DNA of 64,000 bases from Monocercomonoides exilis PA203 (lineage: Eukaryota > Protista > Preaxostyla): the NCBI GenBank assembly GCA_001643675.2, contig LSRY02000021.1:62001-126000 (forward strand). The letters run 5' to 3'. Below are positions 40,051 through 61,156 of this stretch, one piece after another. Each line of letters begins with the position of its first letter. Position 1 is the first letter of the stretch. The translations under genes and the position numbers were made by a program. Below the pieces are notes generated by a model. It had not been told where the DNA came from. It worked only from the letters and a program-made list of their open reading frames with translations, and did no database searches.

Positions 40051-42969
40051 TTATTCAACATTTTCTATTCCCGCATCATCCTCATCCAACGGAGGAAATG
40101 CCAAGCAATGCTGGTCGGAATCTCTGAGAAGCAAGAAAGGCTTCAAAAATCTTCTTTCCTCTTCATCCCTTGCTTCACTCTCAAGTGATGCATCCTCCAT
40201 TTCCTTCTCGTCTGTGCCATCTTCTGAGTCTGTCTGTCTTTTCCCCTTTGCCTTGTTCCCTGCTTCTTCTGAGTGCACACCCCATCTGAGGCTCCTGATT
40301 GTGAAGTGTGGGTGTGGCGGAGCAACACAGCTGATGCCGTTCTTCGAGTAGAGGTAGAGCACAGACGGTGCAGCAGGCGATGTGGAATAGGAAAACTGTG
40401 CTTGTGAAGGAGGAGAGGCAGTGCAGAAGGCAAGAACAGAGGGATATTCAAACGAGCCTGAAGTGTTTTTATAGCAAGGACACCTAAATAAATATGAATA
40501 AAATGAAAGGGAAAAGAAAATGTATTTTTTATTTTATTTTTTGAAATTTGAGAAAGAAAAACAAAATTGTTTCAAAAGTACATGCAAAAAAAGGATGAGG
40601 AAAATAAAGAAGACAAACCATTGGATGTCTTTGATGTACTTGCTGGTGATGATGAGGGCACACAACGTGAGTGAAGAGACATCCCAAATCCAAATGCAAT
40701 GAGGCGAAGATTCTGATTGATCACAATAAAATGCAATATTTAAATAAAAAAAAGAAAGAAAGAAAGAAAAAGTGGTTTCATAAATGCAAAGAAAATTATG
40801 AATAAACAATTGGGGAAAAAAAATTGAATTTCACAAATAATAAGTGGATAAAATTTGCAAAAAACAAACCAGAAACGGAAGCCAGAAACTGACCCGAAGA
40901 TGACCATTCCAACATCTTCACGCCACTCTTCATCAGTGGAGGCACTGAAGAAGCAGAAGACGATGAAGACGAGAAAGAAAGTGAAGATGCAGATGAGGTG
41001 GAAGAGGTAGAGGAGAATGAAGAAGAAGATGATGATGAAGTGCCTTTTGATGAGGAAGAAGCAAAAGAAGAAGAAGACGGAAGAGAAAGAAGAGAAGACA
41101 AGGCAGATGAGCTGTATGACGAAGAGGCAGAAGGAAACATCTTCGTCAGGCAGAGCACAGCCGACGGAGGATATTGCGACTGCTTCTCCTGAGATGCAGA
41201 AGATGAGGAAAAAGAAGAAGAGACAGAAGAGAAATGGGAAGAAAGGCAGGCTGAAGTGCTTTGTGGGTGAGTGAACACAACATTCTTCATTTGCTCTGCT
41301 TTTGTGCGCGAAAGATCTCCGTCGCTTTTTTTCTTCGCTGCGTTTTCGGCTGTTTTGCTGCCTTCGCTTTTTGCTGCAGAGCTGTCAGCTTTCAAAGAAA
41401 CGAGCGTAAAAGACGACGGAACAGAAGGTGACGGAGGGTTTTCTTTGAAGATGAGTGTGAGTGGCGTCAGTTGTGACAGCAGCGGAGTGGCAGGGCTCTG
41501 AGTGGATGAAGTGAAAGGAAAGGAAGATTGCGAAGGAAGTGTCAGTGGAATCGTCGGGAGATGGACGAAGCCGTCGAAGGGAAGAGAAAACGGAAGCAGT
41601 TGGATGAGACGAACCTGCACGAAACAAGAACAAGTACATTTAAATAAAATAATAATAAAGGATAAAATAAAATAAAAAATAATAATTATTAAATTCAGTT
41701 TAAGTTCAGAATCAACTGTAAAATTGCACAAATTGACTGAAAAATAACTTTAAATAGCTCACGAAAATGAAGCACAAAGCCAAAATACGAAAATGACCAA
41801 AAGGAAGTTTATATAAACTTATTACACATAAAATAACATTCACATCAAATAGAGTTCACTGACAACTGAATAAACACAAAGCATACAACATCATCAAAGC
41901 CACCAATGGCAATCAAAGAGCTTTGCTTATTGTTGGACCTTCGCACAAGCCTTGTGGAGAACGAAGGAGAAATAACCAAAGATGACTGCACAGAAGATTG
42001 TTGTGGCTGAGTTTGAGTGCTGGCTCCAAGTGGAAGTGAAGATGTTGGAGAAACAGAACGTTCATGTGATTGTGACATGCCATGCGAAGAAAATGGAATG
42101 GGAGGAGAAACAACAACGGATTGAAGCGACAAAGGCAACGCTGAAGAGGGAAATTGGCTGTACAGTTTCCCGTCCAAAGTATAGAAGAGCATTTTACCTT
42201 CCAAAACAGAATCTGATACTCCAATCACATATGAAGGTTGAGCAAATGATTGATCACCAGAAGAAAAGTCAGATAACGAATTGGAAATGGTAATTCCAGA
42301 TGCATCAACTGTATCAACTGGAAATGTCTTTAAGTTTTGTTCATCAAATAGAATGAAACACAACATTTATGAAAAAAAATAAAAAAACCAAACACGAATC
42401 AAATTCCAATCACTTGCAGAAATTATATTCACAAAATCTCTGCTTTTCCTTCGCTCAAGAATAAATAGGAATGCTCCATCTTCGCTGAACGCGAAACTTC
42501 CTTTTGAATGTTTGGGGTATTTTATTGAAAATATTGAAGAATCAGTCAGCGAATATATGGTAGCTTTAAGCTGAAGGTGAGAAAAAGAAATTAAATGTCG
42601 AGAATCTGGAGTCCACAGAATTCTCGAGCAACCTAAAGCACCAAAGTCCAATTCACATCTCCATTGAGGTTCAAGAAGAGAAAAAAGTTGCGCCATTCCC
42701 CGTTTTTTATTGCTTTGGAATTGAAAAGCATTATAAAAATACGAATTAATGCGCTTTTAAAAACACAAATCATACCAGCAACAAACTAATGACGAATCAG
42801 GAGACCATTTGATTTGTTCAATTTTGAAACTTACAGTAAACTGACCAACAACAAACAAGGATTTTGCATTTCTCAAAGTTATGCCTTGAGAACTAATAGA
42901 GCATATATAAAGACCATTGGGAGATATTTTTGATGACGAACTATGAGGAAAAGGAAAAGAGAAATCCAT
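40051..42969 (-). CDS. WRAP73: WD-repeat protein WRAP73/WDR8 (centrosome/cilia), multi-exon
   Basis: MDFS..KISPNG, IKWSPDS, PQWRCELDFGALGCSRILWTPDSRHL, IKYPKH..FSEDG..ERRKSRDFV, GVKMLEWSSSGQFLA, CIWIWDV..LYLYS. Confidence 0.85.
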
Positions 42970-45458
42970 ATTTTGAGAATTTAATAATGGGAGAAAACTT
43001 AAGCAAATTCAAATATTTTGGAAAACAAAGCAATTCACTTGCAAATAAATAAAAGATAAAACAGAAATGTTATTTAATTGAAAATCAAAGCAATTTATTG
43101 GTATCAATTTCTTGAACATGAATCAAAAAAATTTTTTTTCATTCCCAAAAAGGTTTGCATTCCTTTGCATATTTGGAAATTTTTTCCTTTACCAAAACTT
43201 TTTTTGAAGATGAATTTGTTGGAACCAAAAATGATTATTCGTCATCTTCCTATCACATGAGTTTGCAGATCAGCGACGTTGCATTTGTGCTATAAACATG
43301 AAAGGATAACACTGTGCATCATATATCCATTTATAGTTAGTGTTAATAATGGTGGACACTTTCAATAACCGTGGACAATGAATATTATTGTGGGTTTGGC
43401 CTTTTTTTTTGGTTTTTGCCGTTTCAAAAATTATCAGTTATTGCAATGAAAAAAGTTATTTTATAACCATTTGATGTGTTAAAATAAAAAGTTAGAATAT
43501 TCAAAAACGTAAACTTTATGGGAACAAACTACAAGAATAAAAGGTTTGATCGATTGAAACTTTTAATGATAGAAAATTCATCGAAAAAAAGAACTTATGA
43601 ATCTTCTGTTGATTTCTCAACAGTTCACGACAAAATAATACAGATTTTCAGTCCAAACACAGCCGATACAGTTTACAACGACATATCTAATGCATCACCT
43701 TCTGATAACTTTGAATTAGTGAAATCTTTGCATTCATCAATTTCAATTCATTCACCAGCCAAAGATTCGTGTCGCACGATAGCGTTTATTACTCCTTTTG
43801 GAAAAACAAGAGTTGATTCAATATTGAATACTCCTCTTGAACAGAAATCAAAGCAAAAAGGCAAACCTTTGTCGATTGATGCTAAAGAAGAAGAAAAACT
43901 TGTCAAGCTTTGTATTCAAAAATATGATGAAGGAGATCCATTTACGCAACGGACATTTCTTGATTATGTGAATCAAACTTATGAAAAAACTTTAACATAC
44001 AACTACAGTCGCTATTTCCTGAAAAGGTATCAGTCTAATCTTGATGAGCAAATTGCAACTCCATTGGAAAGCAAACGGTATGTTGTTACACAAGACAGTG
44101 GATTAGAATACAAAAATAAATTGACACAAAAACTTGATGGAATTAGAGCAGAGCTAATATTCTGTATGGACGAGACAGGCGTCCAAGAGTTTGTTGATTC
44201 GAAAAAAAGAAGAGTGATATGTCCAAAAGAAATTGTTAAGGGAAGTGCAAAATTCAAGGTTAATCGAGACAACAGATTAGTATCTGTTATTGGTTGTATC
44301 CCATTAATTGGATTTTCCGTAAAACCGATGCTGCTGATCAAAAGACAAACAATTGATGAAGATACATACTCAAAACTTATTTTAGGACTCGATTTGGAAA
44401 TTAGATCATCTCCCAAAGGTTACAGTACATCTATAGCATTTGTCCATTGGATCAACGATTGCTTTATACCTCACATAAATAAAATAAAGACAAATATCAA
44501 CGAAAAAACTCTATTACTGGCTGATGGTCATTCATCCCATTCCTCGCAAGAAGCAAATGACTTATTATTGAGCAATAATATTGATTTGTTTTTTATTCCT
44601 CCACATTCTTCACATTTATTATCTCCTTTAGATCTTACCACTTTTTCCATTTTTAAAAGAGAAATTCGAAGATTATCAACAATCGTGCCTTCAACAACTC
44701 AAGCAAAGCTGGTTGACAACATAGTGCGAAGCTATCAAACGGCTACAGTTCCATATTGAAATCGAGCAGGATTTCTTAGAGCAGGAATATCTATAAAACG
44801 AGTTAATTCCACTTTTGCTGGTGAATTGAACAAAGATCATATCGATAAACAAATTAATCAAATGAATTCAGGAGACAAACAAAGGATTTAACAATTGAAA
44901 AGCCTATAATAATGAATTACGAAAATTTGGATTCATGGATATCTGAAAATGCAGAGATGCTTTCCAAAGCATTAAAGAAAAAACGAATCAAAATTGGATC
45001 TGATAAAGATTTGTCATTCACGAGAAAAAGAGAAGATCAATCAAATTCAAAGCATGTTATTATGAAACGAAAGTACAGCAAAAAAAACAAGTCGAAAAAA
45101 GATAACACGGAGAGAATGGGAAAGATTGAAAGCAACAGAAAAAAAATCAAATTCAATGAGCAAAGAGGTTACATTCGCCCTTTCGATGACACTAAGTTGC
45201 TAAGAAAAAAAAGAAAGGCTTACGAATACACATGTGAGAATAGCTGCAGATATAAAAGCCAATGCCTATTTCAGACAAACGATTTCACCGCCATATGTGC
45301 AAACCAAACAGAAACAGAGATTGATGATAACGATTGTGAACACTGCAATGACAACGATATGAACATCAATTTGGAATTGATAGACAATGATGAGACAGAA
45401 AATTGTGAAGGTGATGATGATCTTGATCAGAAGGATAATGAAAAAAGCAATTCTGAGC

Positions 45459-47855
45459 GGCATAGGTCTAAATTGTACCAGTAGTGAATATGATATAATT
45501 TGATGAATATTTGAAATATTATTGATTGTCATAATTAATTAACACTGTACTATCAAAAAAATTTCAAAAATCTTTTATTAAAAAATAAAACAAAAATATA
45601 TGATCAAACCCATAAAAACACTTTTATTTTTTCATTTTTTATTTTAACAAACGTATTGTGACAGTTAAATTGTTAATAACCGAATTAATGTTCACATAAA
45701 ATAAATTTCTTCGTATTTCAATGATTTTATTTCATAAATTTGCTTTTCGTTGGTTGTGATCAAATTATATTAGAAGAATGATGCATGCTTGATAATTAGA
45801 AGTTTTTTACAGAGAACTTAATTATAAATGAAGAAAAATAATTAATTAGGTGAGAATGGGGTGGATCGAAGACAACAGGAGAAAGCGACTCGTGCACTGA
45901 TGGAAAATCGAGTGGCGGGGCTATTTTCATGTACAGCAAGGGAAATGGAGAACTATCTGTTTCACATTGTCTGTTTAATAACTGTTTTTCATTCAGTTGT
46001 GGAGGTGGAATTATGTGCCTATCAATTGATTTTGTGGATATCGAAAATAATGTGTTCAACGCCTGTACAGCACAAAATCAATATGGAGGAGGATTATATG
46101 TGAATTGAATTTCTACGTGTGCTCAGATCAGAGGATGTGAATTCCAGAATTGAAAAGCAAATAGCTATGGAGGTGTTCTTAATCTTAATAATTTTAACGT
46201 TTCAGGAATAGGATGCATTGAAGCAGAAAATGAAGGAGGAGAGAGTGCATGTGTATTCGACTGCATTTTCACTTCATGCTCACTTTCTGGATCAAATGGA
46301 GGAGGCCTGTATTGGGCTACTGTTCCTTATCAATTCAAAATGAGGAGCATTCAGTTTATCTCCTGTACAGCTTCGTCACAAGGTGGGGGAATGAGACTGG
46401 ATCCAAATCAAGCAACAGGGCTAGTTGATAGGTGCTATTGTTATTTCCTTTTCTTTCATGAATGTAAATGCTCTGCTAATATTCCATATGGGCATGATTT
46501 AGAATTTGCAGATTATGACAATGTTTTTTTGAGCACAGGAAATCCGTTCAAATAATGCTCCACCACAAACACAGATGAACAGAGGGCGTGCTGTGCATAC
46601 AATTATACGGGAAGCAACTGGTCTGTTCAGCACACGGAAAAGAAGGATTAGCTGAAGAGAGGGATTCTCAACCGATTTGTCGCAGTGAGCGGATAGCAGC
46701 ACAGACCAGTTGTGCGAAACGGATGAGATTACTGCATTCCATGCCATTGACATTGCAGTCAATTGGAGTAGAACACAGACAAGTTAAGTGGTTTCTCTGT
46801 TGGAAGGGAATCATTGCAATGAAGAGACAGCAACAATTAATTTTGGATTTATGAAGATTTCTGTTTTGGGGAAAGGGAAGGAAGTAAGTGTGATTGGGAC
46901 GAATTCACTTTCTTCATCTTCAAAAACGCTGTTCAGTGTGGCAAGCGGGCAGCAAGCGGTAGGGCATGTGGGAATTGATCACTACGCGACAAGAGATTCT
47001 TCACCGAGCGTATTTGTGGTGCCTGTGGAGAGCGAGGCTCTTTCTCCGGAGGATGTTTTGATCTCGTAGAGTGTTTGTGGAGAATGTGTGACATGTTCAT
47101 CTGTGTTTATGACATTCTTCTCATGGCTAAAGATGGTTGATGTCGAGATAAAAAATATGAAAGCGAATCGACCTCTGTTCACTGAACTATCATCAACAGA
47201 ATCAATATCAGGAGAAAGTCTTCTGGAAATTTGACAATACGAAATGTGAATCGGACAACAGGAGATGAAGTGGTGATGGCAAAGAGGATAAAGAGAGGAG
47301 AGACATTTATGGTGTGGAATACAACAATTGAAGGATGTGAGTGTGCGAATGGGAATGGAGTGGGAATAAAAGCTGAGTTGACTTCTTCAACAAGCCAAGT
47401 TCGCATTGGATATCATTTTCGAAAGACGGAGTGATATTGAATTCTTGTAAGAAAATATTTCTAAATATAAATGAAGACTTTTTCAAATTGTCTTGATATT
47501 TCACATGTTATTCAATGCATTCTTTTCAAACTTTGCAATTTGAATATTTAAAGAAAATATAAAACAATATTCTGATTTGTTCTTTTCTTTAAAAAGAAGA
47601 TGAAATGAAAAAAACAACAAAACAATAAATGCAGTTAATAATCAAAACATAGCTCAAATACATTCATAAAATAAAAAAATGAAAAAATGAAAGAATTTTT
47701 ATGGGTTTGATCAAAAATTTTTGTTTGCTTTTTGAATTAAAAATTTATGAAATTTTTTTGATAGTACAGTGTTAATTAATTATGACAATCAATAATATTT
47801 CAAATATTCATCAAATTATATCATATTCACTACTGGTACAATTTAGACCTATGCC
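45459..47855. mobile_element. 2.4 kb non-autonomous TIR element (Pack-type; Mutator- or Merlin-like ends) with 8-bp TSD
   Basis: Termini GGCATAGGTCTAAATTG... / ...CAATTTAGACCTATGCC; 108 bp perfect inverted repeat extending imperfectly to ~200 bp; TSD TTCTGAGC at 45451-58 and 47856-63. Confidence 0.93.
45850..47434 (+). pseudogene. Captured, decayed internal fragment of a Cys/Gly-rich beta-helix-like (GGAI/GGG repeat) surface-protein gene
   Basis: Translation across stops: SSGGAIFMYS..CLFNNC..GGGIMC..CTAQNQYGGGLYV..SCTASSQGGGMRL..LLEGNH..NVNRTTGD..IEGCECANGNG; multiple nonsense codons and at least one frameshift; no start or end of gene. Confidence 0.75.
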
Positions 47856-48279
47856 TTCTGAGCCTAGTGATGAATGCAAATGCACTGTATATCACACAAG
47901 AAGCATTCGAATTCAAAAATACTCCAATATCTATCAAAATGACCTTGAATCATCTGAGGATGACATTTGATAAATAAAAGTTATGCAAGAAGACTGCAAT
48001 AACAATATATCATCTTCATAAGATATTAGAAATTACCAACAAATAAAATCATTAAACATTGAAGCCATGTTCATTGACAGAAATCAAAATCATTTAGAAT
48101 TCATTAAACAGTTATTTATAGAAATTAATGTTAGTGTGCTCTTCACAGTATAGTTTAATTATGATTATAATTTTACACTTTTTTCTTCAAGAGTTTTCTT
48201 TCCTTTTCTCTAATTTCCCATATAAATATTTTATATACATTGTCACAGATGCTTCTGACAGATAAATAAAGTGCAAAGG

Positions 48280-58492: not shown

Positions 58493-61156
58493 TTAATCTT
58501 TTGAGTGAAATATCACAGGTTCATCTCTCCATCCGAACCCAGAGTTATTTTTGAATGTGATATTCGAAAGGACAAAGTTCAGAGGCTGCTCAACTGTCGA
58601 GGTGCATTCCAGAAACAGCCACCCGCCTCTTCCTGTGGCAGAGCAGAAGCACTCAGAAATCGTGCAAAATGAGCAGTCAAAGCTCCCTCTTTCATTCAAC
58701 ACACAAAACATTCCTCCCCCCTTTCCACATTTCAACCCTCCACACTTCTTCATCGTTGTGTTTCGAATCACCATTTTCAAAGGTTCATCAATATTCTCAT
58801 TTTTAATGATGGGAACGTCCTCTGTTGTGTTTTGTGTGACTTCTTCAAACAAACTCCACTCAACAACAATATCTTTTTCAACTTCATTTTTTTCTCTTCT
58901 TGAGCTCTTTGAAATCCTCAATCCGCTTGCTCCTTCCAGCTCAATATTCTTCATCGTTAGATTATTAACGATCAAAATCGTTGAAGACAGCACAGAAACA
59001 ACATCTTTTGAAAAGCAAAGTGATTGCAATGAAACAAATTCCAATTGAACTGTCCCTCCATCTGCTTTGATCAGTGCATAATCAGTCAATTCTTCTCTAT
59101 CATCTCCTTTTTTGGTGAATGAACAATCTTTCACTATCAAAAAACCATCGTTTGAGCCAACGAGAATGAAAAAATTGACTCTTCCTGTGAATGAAGATGG
59201 AATCACAAAGTTAATTAATTCAAATTTTGTAATTCCAGAAATCTCCATTGCTGCTTCTTCTGCTCCTTCAAGAGAAGAGAGACATTCCAAAGAACATTCT
59301 TCAGTATTATTCGATTTGATAGAAATATCATTGAGTTTAACCCTTTTCTTTAGAATCGCCTTTCCAATGATGTTTAAATTCCTTTCATTTCCCCCTGGTA
59401 GTCTTTTTAATGAATAATCAATTGATAGGCAAGGACAATCCAAAAACCCACAAGCACGCATATCTTTTCCTTTGTCCTCAATAAATACCTCTGAGCCGAG
59501 TGGAAGCCAAAAATAGACAAGTGGAATAGCATTCGTTGAATCATTTCCATCAAAGCCACTCAAGAAGTTCAATGAAATATCAGCCAAATGATCAGACACA
59601 AATGAAAGAGAAGTGTTTGTGATGCTCTGCGTCAAGTTGAATGATTCGACAAACAGGTCATTTCAGTATTTTGCAACATTTGGCTTTTCTGTATCAAAAA
59701 CAGGAGATGAGATAATAAACGGAAAATCATCATCAATCAACTTCAGTGCCATCCCTCCCCCAAACCCAATCTTCCGTTCTTCTGCTGGTGCTGTGCATCC
59801 TGTGAATGTGCATGAAATAATATCCAAATGCGTATTCCCTTTCAACTGCACATTGATAGCCCCTCCTCTGCTTCCATCACCAGCCACAGAGCATCCATCA
59901 AACACACATTCTTCAATCTTTATTTCTGTTTTTGTATTTTCATCATTGCTGTTGCCAATGCTCACACACCCTCCACTTCCAGCTGCTCTTTCGATTTTTG
60001 TGAAATTGCTGTTCGTCATGTTCAACCACAGAGTGTTCATCAACTCGGTATTTGTGCTGCTTCCACACAAAGAGATCAATGGACTTCCACTCAAAGCGGT
60101 TGATAAAGCCGAAAATGAATCAACAGCCAAGGCTCCAGACTTTACAGACAAGAACAAAAATGATAATTCAGATGAAGGCATTTGAAGAAAAAGAGAACAT
60201 TGAGACAGAGTCAACTGTGAAGAAGATGAAATGAAAATGGAGTGTAAAGAGAAAGAAGGAGGAAGAGAGAAGAAAAGTTTGGACAAAACTGTTTCGACTC
60301 CAACTGTCACCATTTCCGAGTTTAATGATGAAGTTGAATCGGAGACTGTCCAGCCACTTTCATCATCATTTCCTCTGATTTCATGCTTCTGTCCAGCAAA
60401 GGTCAATTCATCACTCATCAAAATCATTCCACTCACAGTCACTTTCTTTGGCCCTGTTTGTCTTGTGAGAGAATGCGTCATCATCAAGCAAGGGAATTGG
60501 ACTATTCCACAGTGTGAATGATTGGATGCATCAGAATTGCTCACATATATTTCTTCTGGTGTGGGAAGGAGATAGATGCACAAAGGAATGACCACACTGT
60601 TGTTTCCATTCTCATATCCTCTCACCTTTTCAAGAGAATCCAATGAACCTGTTACACACGAGATCTTTTGAGGATTGGCAATTGCTTCCAGATTGGGTGA
60701 TAAGACAAAAATGTCTTTTCCCCACTTGGCTGTGTTTGATCCAAATGAAGAGGATATCAGGAAATTTGGATTTTCATTCAATAATTGAAGGAGGATTCCT
60801 CCCCCCAAACCATATGTTGCAGAGCAATAACACTTATCAAAAGATCCGCCTTTCACTTTCACTTCATTTTCACTCCCAACACACAGCATCATCGATCCCC
60901 CATCAGTCGATGTTCTGCATCCACATCTTTCAAAAGTGCAAGAATTCAGATCAATGTTTGCCTTGTCATTCGAAAATGATAACACAGCTGCTCTGCTCGT
61001 TGTTCTCTCAATCCCACTGAAGGCACACTCAGAAAGAGTCAATAAAACTTCATTTGTTGAAGAAAGTGAAAACAATGAAGTTGTGGAGATTGTCTTTGCC
61101 CAGTTCACATGTTCCATTTGCAACACCCCATTCTGGACAATCATCAGTTCCGTCAA
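58493..61156 (-). pseudogene. Truncated fragment of the Cys/Gly-rich beta-helix-like surface-protein family with one in-frame TGA (59663-65)
   Basis: ORFs 59663..61156 and 58493..59635 are in the same frame (AKY*NDLFVES); repeated GGG/GGAI motifs and HCG..FPC / ACGFLDCPC motifs; no signal peptide or C-terminus. Confidence 0.72.

Follow-up and report, generated by a model that had tools for sequence, protein, structure and literature searches.

The window analysed here is a stretch of 64,000 nucleotides of the Monocercomonoides exilis PA203 genome (contig LSRY02000021.1, positions 62,001 to 126,000). At 45451-47863 it contains an insertion with long terminal inverted repeats (TIRs) and a target site duplication (TSD), and the interior of this insertion is a broken piece of a host gene. 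A first-pass annotation, made from the sequence alone, had taken it for a gene-capturing ‘Pack’ transposon of either the Mutator or the Merlin superfamily, nested in a pogo element. The locus raises two questions. Which transposase moves an element that encodes none, and was its cargo picked up once or by a system that keeps collecting host genes? Our analysis makes it highly probable that the insertion is a non-autonomous Merlin element in a degenerate pogo element, and that its dead receptor-gene cargo goes back to a single capture and was later replaced in blocks.

Superfamily and movement of the element

The element has a size of 2,397 bp (45459-47855) and GG...CC ends. A repeat search paired a left TIR of 199 nt beginning GGCATAGG (45459-45657, plus strand) with a right TIR of equal length (47657-47855, minus strand); the arms are 91% complementary and their outermost 108 nt are complementary without mismatch. 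The two copies of the 8-bp TSD, TTCTGAGC, are located at 45451-45458 and 47856-47863. The structure described in the first-pass annotation (GG...CC ends, a 108-nt perfect and ~200-nt imperfect TIR, an 8-bp TSD) was reproduced in full and is confirmed. Inward of the left TIR, the alignment of family copies delimits an AT-rich 5′ spacer (45658-45856, plus strand), within which the host-gene homology may start near 45803; by tblastn, the first aligned host residue is 158-175. The cargo follows (45857-47425, plus strand), and an AT-rich 3′ spacer without protein homology (47426-47656, plus strand) extends from the cargo breakpoint to the right TIR and is ~72% conserved among family copies. The GC content is 41% in the cargo versus 19% in the TIR. 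That the element lacks a transposase was corroborated by a tblastn search with a Merlin transposase, which gave no match in the whole 64-kb window (E<1e-4). The terminal 22-mer pattern occurred twice in the window (0.01 expected), and the terminal 25-mer had 104 matches (≤3 mismatches) in the M. exilis genome (82.3 Mb, 101 contigs) versus none for the reversed control.

Merlin is reportedly a superfamily of IS1016/IS1595-related DNA transposons, as described by Feschotte in 2004. Its published definition comprises a TSD of 8 or 9 bp, TIRs of 24-462 bp beginning with 5′-GG (range as quoted in PMC8101967), and a DDE_Tnp_IS1595 transposase in the autonomous partner. In our analysis, termini related to the terminal 25-mer also paired at distances of 3.3-4.2, 5.9-6.9 and 7.8-9.1 kb, mostly with perfect 8-bp TSDs. 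Among the larger elements, L053 (C40:833747-840620, 6,874 bp) has the perfect 8-bp TSD CACAAGAA and shares 22 of its 25 outer nucleotides with the window element. An intact frame of 518 aa in L053 gave a Pfam match to DDE_Tnp_IS1595 (PF12762; E 4e-15, 56.5 bits versus a cutoff of 27 bits). Genome-wide, this transposase has matches at more than 80 places, many of which are stop-free. The TIRs most similar to those of the window element (72-82% over 100-190 nt) were found in L046-L048 (7.8-8.5 kb), which hold degraded copies of the L053-type transposase. The other long frames in the scanned related elements had no Pfam match except for one nested pogo.

A TSD of 8 bp was found in the window copy; 12 of 15 family copies and the majority of the examined elements of related subfamilies have one as well. 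The 199-nt TIR with its 5′-GG falls within the published range. Because the 8-bp TSD, the GG termini, the long TIRs and the IS1595-type transposase correspond to the published definition of Merlin, we assign the element to a Merlin (IS1595-type) lineage with long TIRs, of which it is a non-autonomous member. The first-pass annotation had left the choice between a MULE and a Merlin transposase to the discovery of an autonomous partner; L053 decides it in favour of Merlin. A Merlin transposase made elsewhere would cut and paste the element via the ~22-bp termini common to the lineage and thereby create the 8-bp TSD. Both the shared termini and the TSD length are consistent with such mobilization in trans. 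As separate observations, one 2.4-kb family copy adjoins the remnant of a Merlin transposase gene (L040:3902-4225), and a 513-aa pogo DDE_1 frame (L051:1871-3409) lies within a Merlin element of another subfamily, which is the reverse of the nesting seen in the window.

A genome-wide check of the TIR by pairing of terminal 25-mers revealed at least 23 copies of 2.3-2.6 kb. We retrieved 14 paired copies besides the window copy, most of which align to it over the full length with 64-99% identity. Perfect 8-bp TSDs flank 12 of these 15 copies, and every TSD is different. The youngest relatives, C6:318422-320818 and C25:23220-25617, are 99.1-99.6% identical to the window copy (~99.3%). The flanks of the three young copies are unrelated to one another, every copy has a separate 8-bp TSD, and the identity ends exactly at the termini. 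They differ at 16 positions in total, none of which affects the six stop codons of the cargo. The cargo was therefore dead before these copies were made, and the earlier claim that an already decayed cargo had been mobilized recently is upheld. We conclude that the element is a recently moved cut-and-paste transposon.

Two loci of the family have an unusual arrangement. At L045 (C9:703045-708649), two 2.3-kb copies (termini at C9:702423-704733 and C9:706961-709270) are inverted and 2.2 kb apart, so that they form a composite or a palindrome. In the copy at L037:1500-3899 (C20:278130-280529), the ends read AG...CT rather than GG...CC, and a TSD is missing. The sequences directly adjoining this copy are themselves inverted repeats (at least 11 nt), which would fit a position within another palindromic element or longer ends of the copy.

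The element in the window is inserted downstream of a pogo-type transposase frame of 413 aa (43518-44756, plus strand) that matches Pfam DDE_1 (E 1.1e-20, 74 bits versus a cutoff of 22 bits), in accord with the proposed nesting in a pogo-family element. This frame is stopped by an in-frame TGA at 44757, within the conserved motif that follows the DDE_1 domain. A further frame of the host element, from the list of open reading frames, is located downstream of it in a different phase and is split by the insertion: its upstream part (44912-45458, plus strand) reads across the TSD, and its downstream part (47864-47970, plus strand) ends with a stop at 47968-47970. When the element and one TSD copy are removed, both parts join to a single open frame of 217 codons. 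The first-pass annotation had stated that removal restores the C-terminus of the host transposase. An open frame is indeed restored, but it is out of phase with DDE_1 and beyond the TGA, so that it is no more than a putative C-terminus. The interrupted frame had no similarity to a second pogo transposase (L051) in this single comparison. The TGA at 44757 and the different phase of the split frame indicate that the host pogo copy was already degenerate before the insertion, and the element landed in the 3′ part of this pogo element.

Genome searches with the left and the right flank detected the same six other places (C49, C17, C20, C47 and two on C91) at 81-94% identity. At all six paralogous places the flanks abut exactly with nothing between them, and a single copy of TTCTGAGC, in which the left flank ends, is present at the uninterrupted site. 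On C49, for example, the left flank ends at 42412 and the alignment of the right flank (from its third base) starts at 42415. Therefore, the host is a seven-copy repeat that is interrupted only in the window copy.

Other explanations for the identity and the spread of the element have to be weighed against these results. Long TIRs starting with G around a captured gene fragment are also what a Pack-MULE would display, i.e. a Mutator-type non-autonomous element moved by a MULE transposase; no tool result was in favour of it. Mutator and Pack-MULE elements have TSDs of 9-11 bp and a MURA-type partner, whereas an 8-bp TSD flanks 12 of 15 copies here and most examined elements of related subfamilies. 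Moreover, the IS1595/Merlin-type enzyme is the only transposase found between these termini, and other long frames of the scanned relatives (one nested pogo aside) had no Pfam match. We consider a Pack-MULE very improbable, and of the two superfamilies named by the first-pass annotation Mutator is discarded, while Merlin is favoured by the 8-bp TSD, the GG ends and the DDE_Tnp_IS1595 transposase of relatives with the same termini. The TSD length would also fit a hAT element, but the ~200-nt TIRs and the IS1595-type transposase do not agree with the short TIRs and the hAT transposase of that superfamily. Finally, the near-identical copies could be segmental duplications of an immobile element with incidental inverted repeats. 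The only support for this comes from the very repeat-rich genome (46% repeats; PMC8767320). It is extremely improbable in view of three young copies in unrelated flanks with their own 8-bp TSDs, of an identity that ends exactly at the termini, and of the precise empty site in six sister pogo copies.

Origin of the cargo

The cargo (45857-47425) covers residues ~175-712 of the 2,892-aa protein MONOS_9600 (P0009; residues 175-712 in three pieces by tblastn). It contains six in-frame stops (at 46106, 46151, 46553, 46649, 46785 and 47067) and two frameshifts (near 46693/46710 and 47204/47228), and the first-pass description of a stop-riddled, gene-derived interior of ~1.6 kb is accurate. An alternative genetic code was considered for these stops and rejected, as all three stop codons co-occur with frameshifts; it is also contradicted by the long standard-code frames that host genes and the sister copy L039 contain.

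L039 (C12:496366-498763) has an open frame of 502 codons across the cargo. With this frame (497 residues), more than 2,000 candidate places were obtained in the genome. The best 86 were scored and had 56-68% identity, and many of them sit in stop-free frames of 2,000-4,500 codons. In an exhaustive protein search, residues 2-496 of the L039 frame mapped to positions ~260-350 through ~750-845 of proteins of 1,000-3,000 aa. The cargo is therefore an internal piece that was cut at both ends. The matching proteins, such as MONOS_9600, are annotated as Monocercomonoides exilis. MONOS_9600 has a hydrophobic membrane-spanning stretch (by sequence) and a C-terminal kinase-domain match, in agreement with a large published ‘protein tyrosine kinase’ family that overlaps unclassified repeats of the M. 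exilis genome (PMC8767320). We conclude that the cargo is a ~1.6-kb ectodomain piece of the giant receptor-kinase-like family with a putative beta-helix fold. In this respect the first-pass annotation, which had described a non-autonomous TIR element carrying a dead piece from within a host surface-protein gene, was correct.

With regard to the fold, a Pfam scan of the cargo pieces and of the intact L039 frame gave no match. Language-model neighbours of the cargo carry DUF1565, Chlam_PMP or Beta_helix domains (scores 0.91-0.96). The AlphaFold model of the cargo is all-beta, with block-mean pLDDT values mostly of 67-85 over residues 21-220 and 50.7 overall; the confidence is moderate over the first ~260 residues only. 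A Foldseek search with this model returned no match at E≤0.001, and its weak rows were nearly all beta-solenoids.

Several further sequences related to the cargo were noted. At 58493-61156 (minus strand), the window contains two adjacent open frames of 380 and 497 aa for a Cys/Gly-rich repeat protein without Pfam match, separated by a stop or a frameshift near 59635-59663. The first-pass annotation had assigned this gene and the cargo to the same type of family. A relationship exists, but it is a distant one: the direct comparison gave E 0.004, and with later modules of the giant receptors the identity amounts to 21-28%. MONOS_7833 (P0005), a cargo-like protein of 536 aa that is annotated as hypothetical protein in public databases, clusters with the L039 cargo. 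It is located on C24 (1,213,020 bp), a contig with two family copies. A receptor-gene fragment within L053 (L053:2031-6638, minus strand) is nearly free of in-frame stops (two in 1,536 codons). Its end consists of a hydrophobic helix and subsequent basic residues, so that it corresponds to a near-intact membrane-anchored ectodomain.

Probable capture and block replacement of the cargo

In the aligned 2.4-kb family copies, the cargo begins near host residue 158-176 and ends near residue 697-712. In the few copies that deviate, an indel or the edge of the retrieved locus interrupts the alignment. All 15 aligned copies share the fragment, the breakpoints and the spacers, and homology extends over the full length except for a large indel in one copy. 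A start codon is not conserved at the junction, and the ATG of L039 is unique to it. The cargo of two further TIR subfamilies (L062 and L049/L050) starts at residue 166-168, at nearly the same distance from the terminus; their TIRs are not recognizably similar to those of the window element beyond the outer 22 nt. Since the breakpoints are shared across the family copies and with two other subfamilies, our data favour a single old capture, after which the cargo was inherited with different deletions. The ~1.6-kb ectodomain piece would have been captured once, long ago, and in this subfamily it would have been dead before the last round of transposition.

The L046-type cargo begins at its 5′ end with sequence that is also present at the 3′ end of the cargo described here (77-81% nucleotide identity for copies L044 and L063). 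No cargo from any gene other than the receptor family was found in the related subfamilies examined. The element thus has the features of Pack-TYPE transposons insofar as it is a non-autonomous TIR element with TSDs and an interior from host coding sequence. Repeated capture, however, was not observed: the 15 aligned copies carry the same fragment and the related subfamilies carry pieces of one gene family. A ‘Pack’ system that picks up different genes, as suggested by the first-pass annotation, is not supported by these elements.

Within its fixed slot, the cargo is a mosaic. Within the family, the TIRs are most conserved (80%) and the cargo is least conserved (67%), and cargo identity was lower than non-cargo identity in 86 of 91 copy pairs. 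In pairs with 98% identical non-cargo parts, cargo blocks were merely 57-79% identical. L035 and L037 differ by 33.8% in block 401-800 and by 4.5% elsewhere, and within this block L037 is 97-99% identical to L040. Likewise, L044 and L063 differ by 40.5% in block 901-1300 and by 8.9% outside. These blocks were picked after inspection of the data, but we judged the contrasts to be far too large for this to matter. The nearest relative of a copy shifts from one alignment window to the next along the cargo. The first 692 nt of the cargo at our locus are 83% identical to C53:197781-198472 and 80% identical to C71:90234-90925, compared with ~71% to sister elements, and the best matches of the replaced blocks of L035, L044 and L063 (79-86%) lie outside the family. 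The median pairwise ratio of nonsynonymous to synonymous substitutions (dN/dS) of the cargo was 0.36 in the cargo frame versus 0.97 and 1.00 in the two wrong frames. Third codon positions of the cargo are the most diverged, yet not the most GC-rich.

Taken together, these sequence comparisons point to a cargo that would have been replaced repeatedly, in blocks, by related sequences that have been under protein-level selection. Such replacement would explain why the cargo is mosaic yet protein-constrained despite the broken individual copies. Unlike the ends and the spacers, the cargo would be replaced block by block from related copies or genes. Template switching during excision-gap repair is a known route to chimeric elements; it would generate a mosaic cargo and is the most likely mechanism here. 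The direction of replacement that we saw was that of blocks entering the element cargo from relatives, and only transposon cargo was observed to be rewritten. That the element may help to recombine or disperse the receptor family, as proposed in the first-pass annotation, is a hypothesis. A two-way exchange of ectodomain blocks between Merlin elements and giant receptor-kinase genes is a candidate that we regard as rather unlikely. If true, the mobile copies would constitute a dispersed reservoir that shuffles variable cassettes among the largest surface-receptor family.

Cargo-like DNA was also seen on C53, C71 and C80 in many inverted pairs 4-20 kb apart that mostly read inward [e.g. C53:301161(+)/305401(-), C80:1277293(+)/1282525(-) and C80:1696478(-)/1702121(+)]. 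Among the matches scored, these pairs include the closest to several replaced cargo blocks. Among the matches listed, no Merlin terminal 25-mer (≤3 mismatches) was found near them.

Two alternatives concern the history of the cargo. According to one, Merlin elements repeatedly acquire host-gene pieces, and the cargo in the window is an independent acquisition. This would account for the different, overlapping receptor-gene segments in different TIR subfamilies, for the intermingling of cargo and giant host proteins in a tree, and for the first 692 nt of the cargo being closer to places outside the family than to the sister copies. The last point, however, is explained if blocks were replaced within a fixed frame. 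All 15 aligned 2.4-kb copies have both breakpoints and the spacers in common, the same 5′ breakpoint recurs in two other subfamilies, and the trees of flanks and cargo broadly agree. In addition, all cargo originates from one gene family, which is not expected of random capture. We consider ongoing capture unlikely. The other alternative reverses the relationship: the beta-helix frame would be a selected accessory gene of the transposon lineage itself, to which the genomic receptor family is related or from which it is derived. Homologous sequence is indeed present in nearly all of the related Merlin elements that were examined, also in those that encode a transposase. The dN/dS of 0.36 and the L053 copy with its two in-frame stops in 1,536 codons and terminal membrane helix also agree with it. 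Yet the piece in the 2.4-kb family is cut mid-protein at both ends and has no conserved start codon, and 14 of 16 copies examined have no open frame longer than ~400 of ~520 codons. The genomic family is far larger, with members that have N-terminal regions absent from the elements, and the one giant protein checked has a kinase domain that the elements lack. Among the giant-gene matches listed, none adjoins a Merlin terminus, and the low dN/dS is explained by imported blocks, as exemplified by L035 and L037, which diverge mostly in one 400-nt block. An accessory gene of this kind is quite improbable.

Some findings nevertheless weigh against the reading that we prefer, namely a Merlin element with a cargo captured once and then rewritten. 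The subfamily with the most similar TIRs has no intact transposase, as L046-L048 are all broken; for this reason the enzyme that moves the young copies probably comes from another subfamily. Overlapping segments of the gene are found in other subfamilies (residues 60-550, 297-541, 571-2240 and 719-2182); the last two accompany the transposase and are oriented inward from the other end. Such segments could have arisen by nested deletion or by separate captures. The protein tree intersperses cargo with host proteins at poor resolution; it is a quick tree (225 columns, 38 of 62 inner branches unresolved), the careful tree search being incomplete. For none of the replaced blocks did we find a near-identical donor: four genome searches, which scored the best ~40 of ~450-640 candidates, yielded nothing above 86% identity. 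Lastly, the predicted beta-helix fold of the cargo is weakly supported, and this label is plausible.

Significance and relation to known transposons

About 35% of the M. exilis assembly has been termed ‘unclassified repeat’, a fraction that has an overlap with the giant family of kinase-related genes (PMC8767320). Our findings show that this fraction includes a mobile Merlin lineage in which pieces of the giant genes are carried permanently. This affects the annotation of the genome, as element-borne fragments such as MONOS_7833 are called as genes and may inflate the gene count. DNA transposons carrying gene fragments, best known from plants, are hereby extended to the Merlin superfamily and to a metamonad. 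Block-wise rewriting of a cargo between near-identical ends would provide a natural record of excision-gap repair in an organism without genetic tools, and the lineage offers a concrete test of the role of transposons in the diversification of a surface-receptor family.

Merlin elements as such are already known from this genus. In Monocercomonoides sp. PA203, more than 100 copies in at least seven families were reported, all with 8-bp TSDs and with TIRs of 23-29 bp (PMC8101967). The element described here shares with them the 8-bp TSD, the GG termini, a TIR length within 24-462 bp, IS1595 relatives and the organism, but its TIRs are ~200 nt long. As far as the published alignment goes, the known elements are ~1.4-1.5 kb in size (PMC8101967). 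The window element, in contrast, has a 1.6-kb receptor fragment and no transposase, and its transposase-bearing relatives carry ~5 kb from the receptor family. The text of PMC8101967 mentions neither captured genes nor non-autonomous copies. A lineage with long TIRs and a cargo, non-autonomous derivatives of it and the rewriting of its fixed slot are new in that none of them was found in the literature searched.

Functionally, the element is of the Pack type, and by membership it is a Merlin. Like Pack-MULE and Pack-CACTA, the Pack-TYPE elements of plants, it is non-autonomous, has TIRs and a TSD-bounded interior from a host gene, and is still mobile (PMC8903248, PMC6379663). It differs from them in its superfamily and in its protist host. 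Furthermore, Pack-TYPE families contain many different captures, whereas at least 23 copies carry one fragment of one gene family here, and it is the rewriting of a fixed cargo slot, rather than new capture, that distinguishes this family. In Turmoil-1 of Caenorhabditis elegans, host coding sequence was similarly incorporated once and inherited by the copies, but there the captured sequence lies within the inverted repeats and not between them (PMC2572040). In contrast to Turmoil-1, the cargo described here is mosaic and comes from the largest gene family of the genome.

Internally deleted and chimeric derivatives that arise by interrupted gap repair are known from P elements, Ac/Ds and Mu. 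These derivatives resemble the window element in that the transposase is lost while both ends are kept, and mosaics are the expected product of repair with template switching. For the Merlin family of M. exilis, we infer this mechanism from the mosaic itself. With hundreds of relatives of the cargo in the genome, switching may also involve sequences outside the element family, and in contrast to P elements, Ac/Ds and Mu the partners appear to include such sequences.

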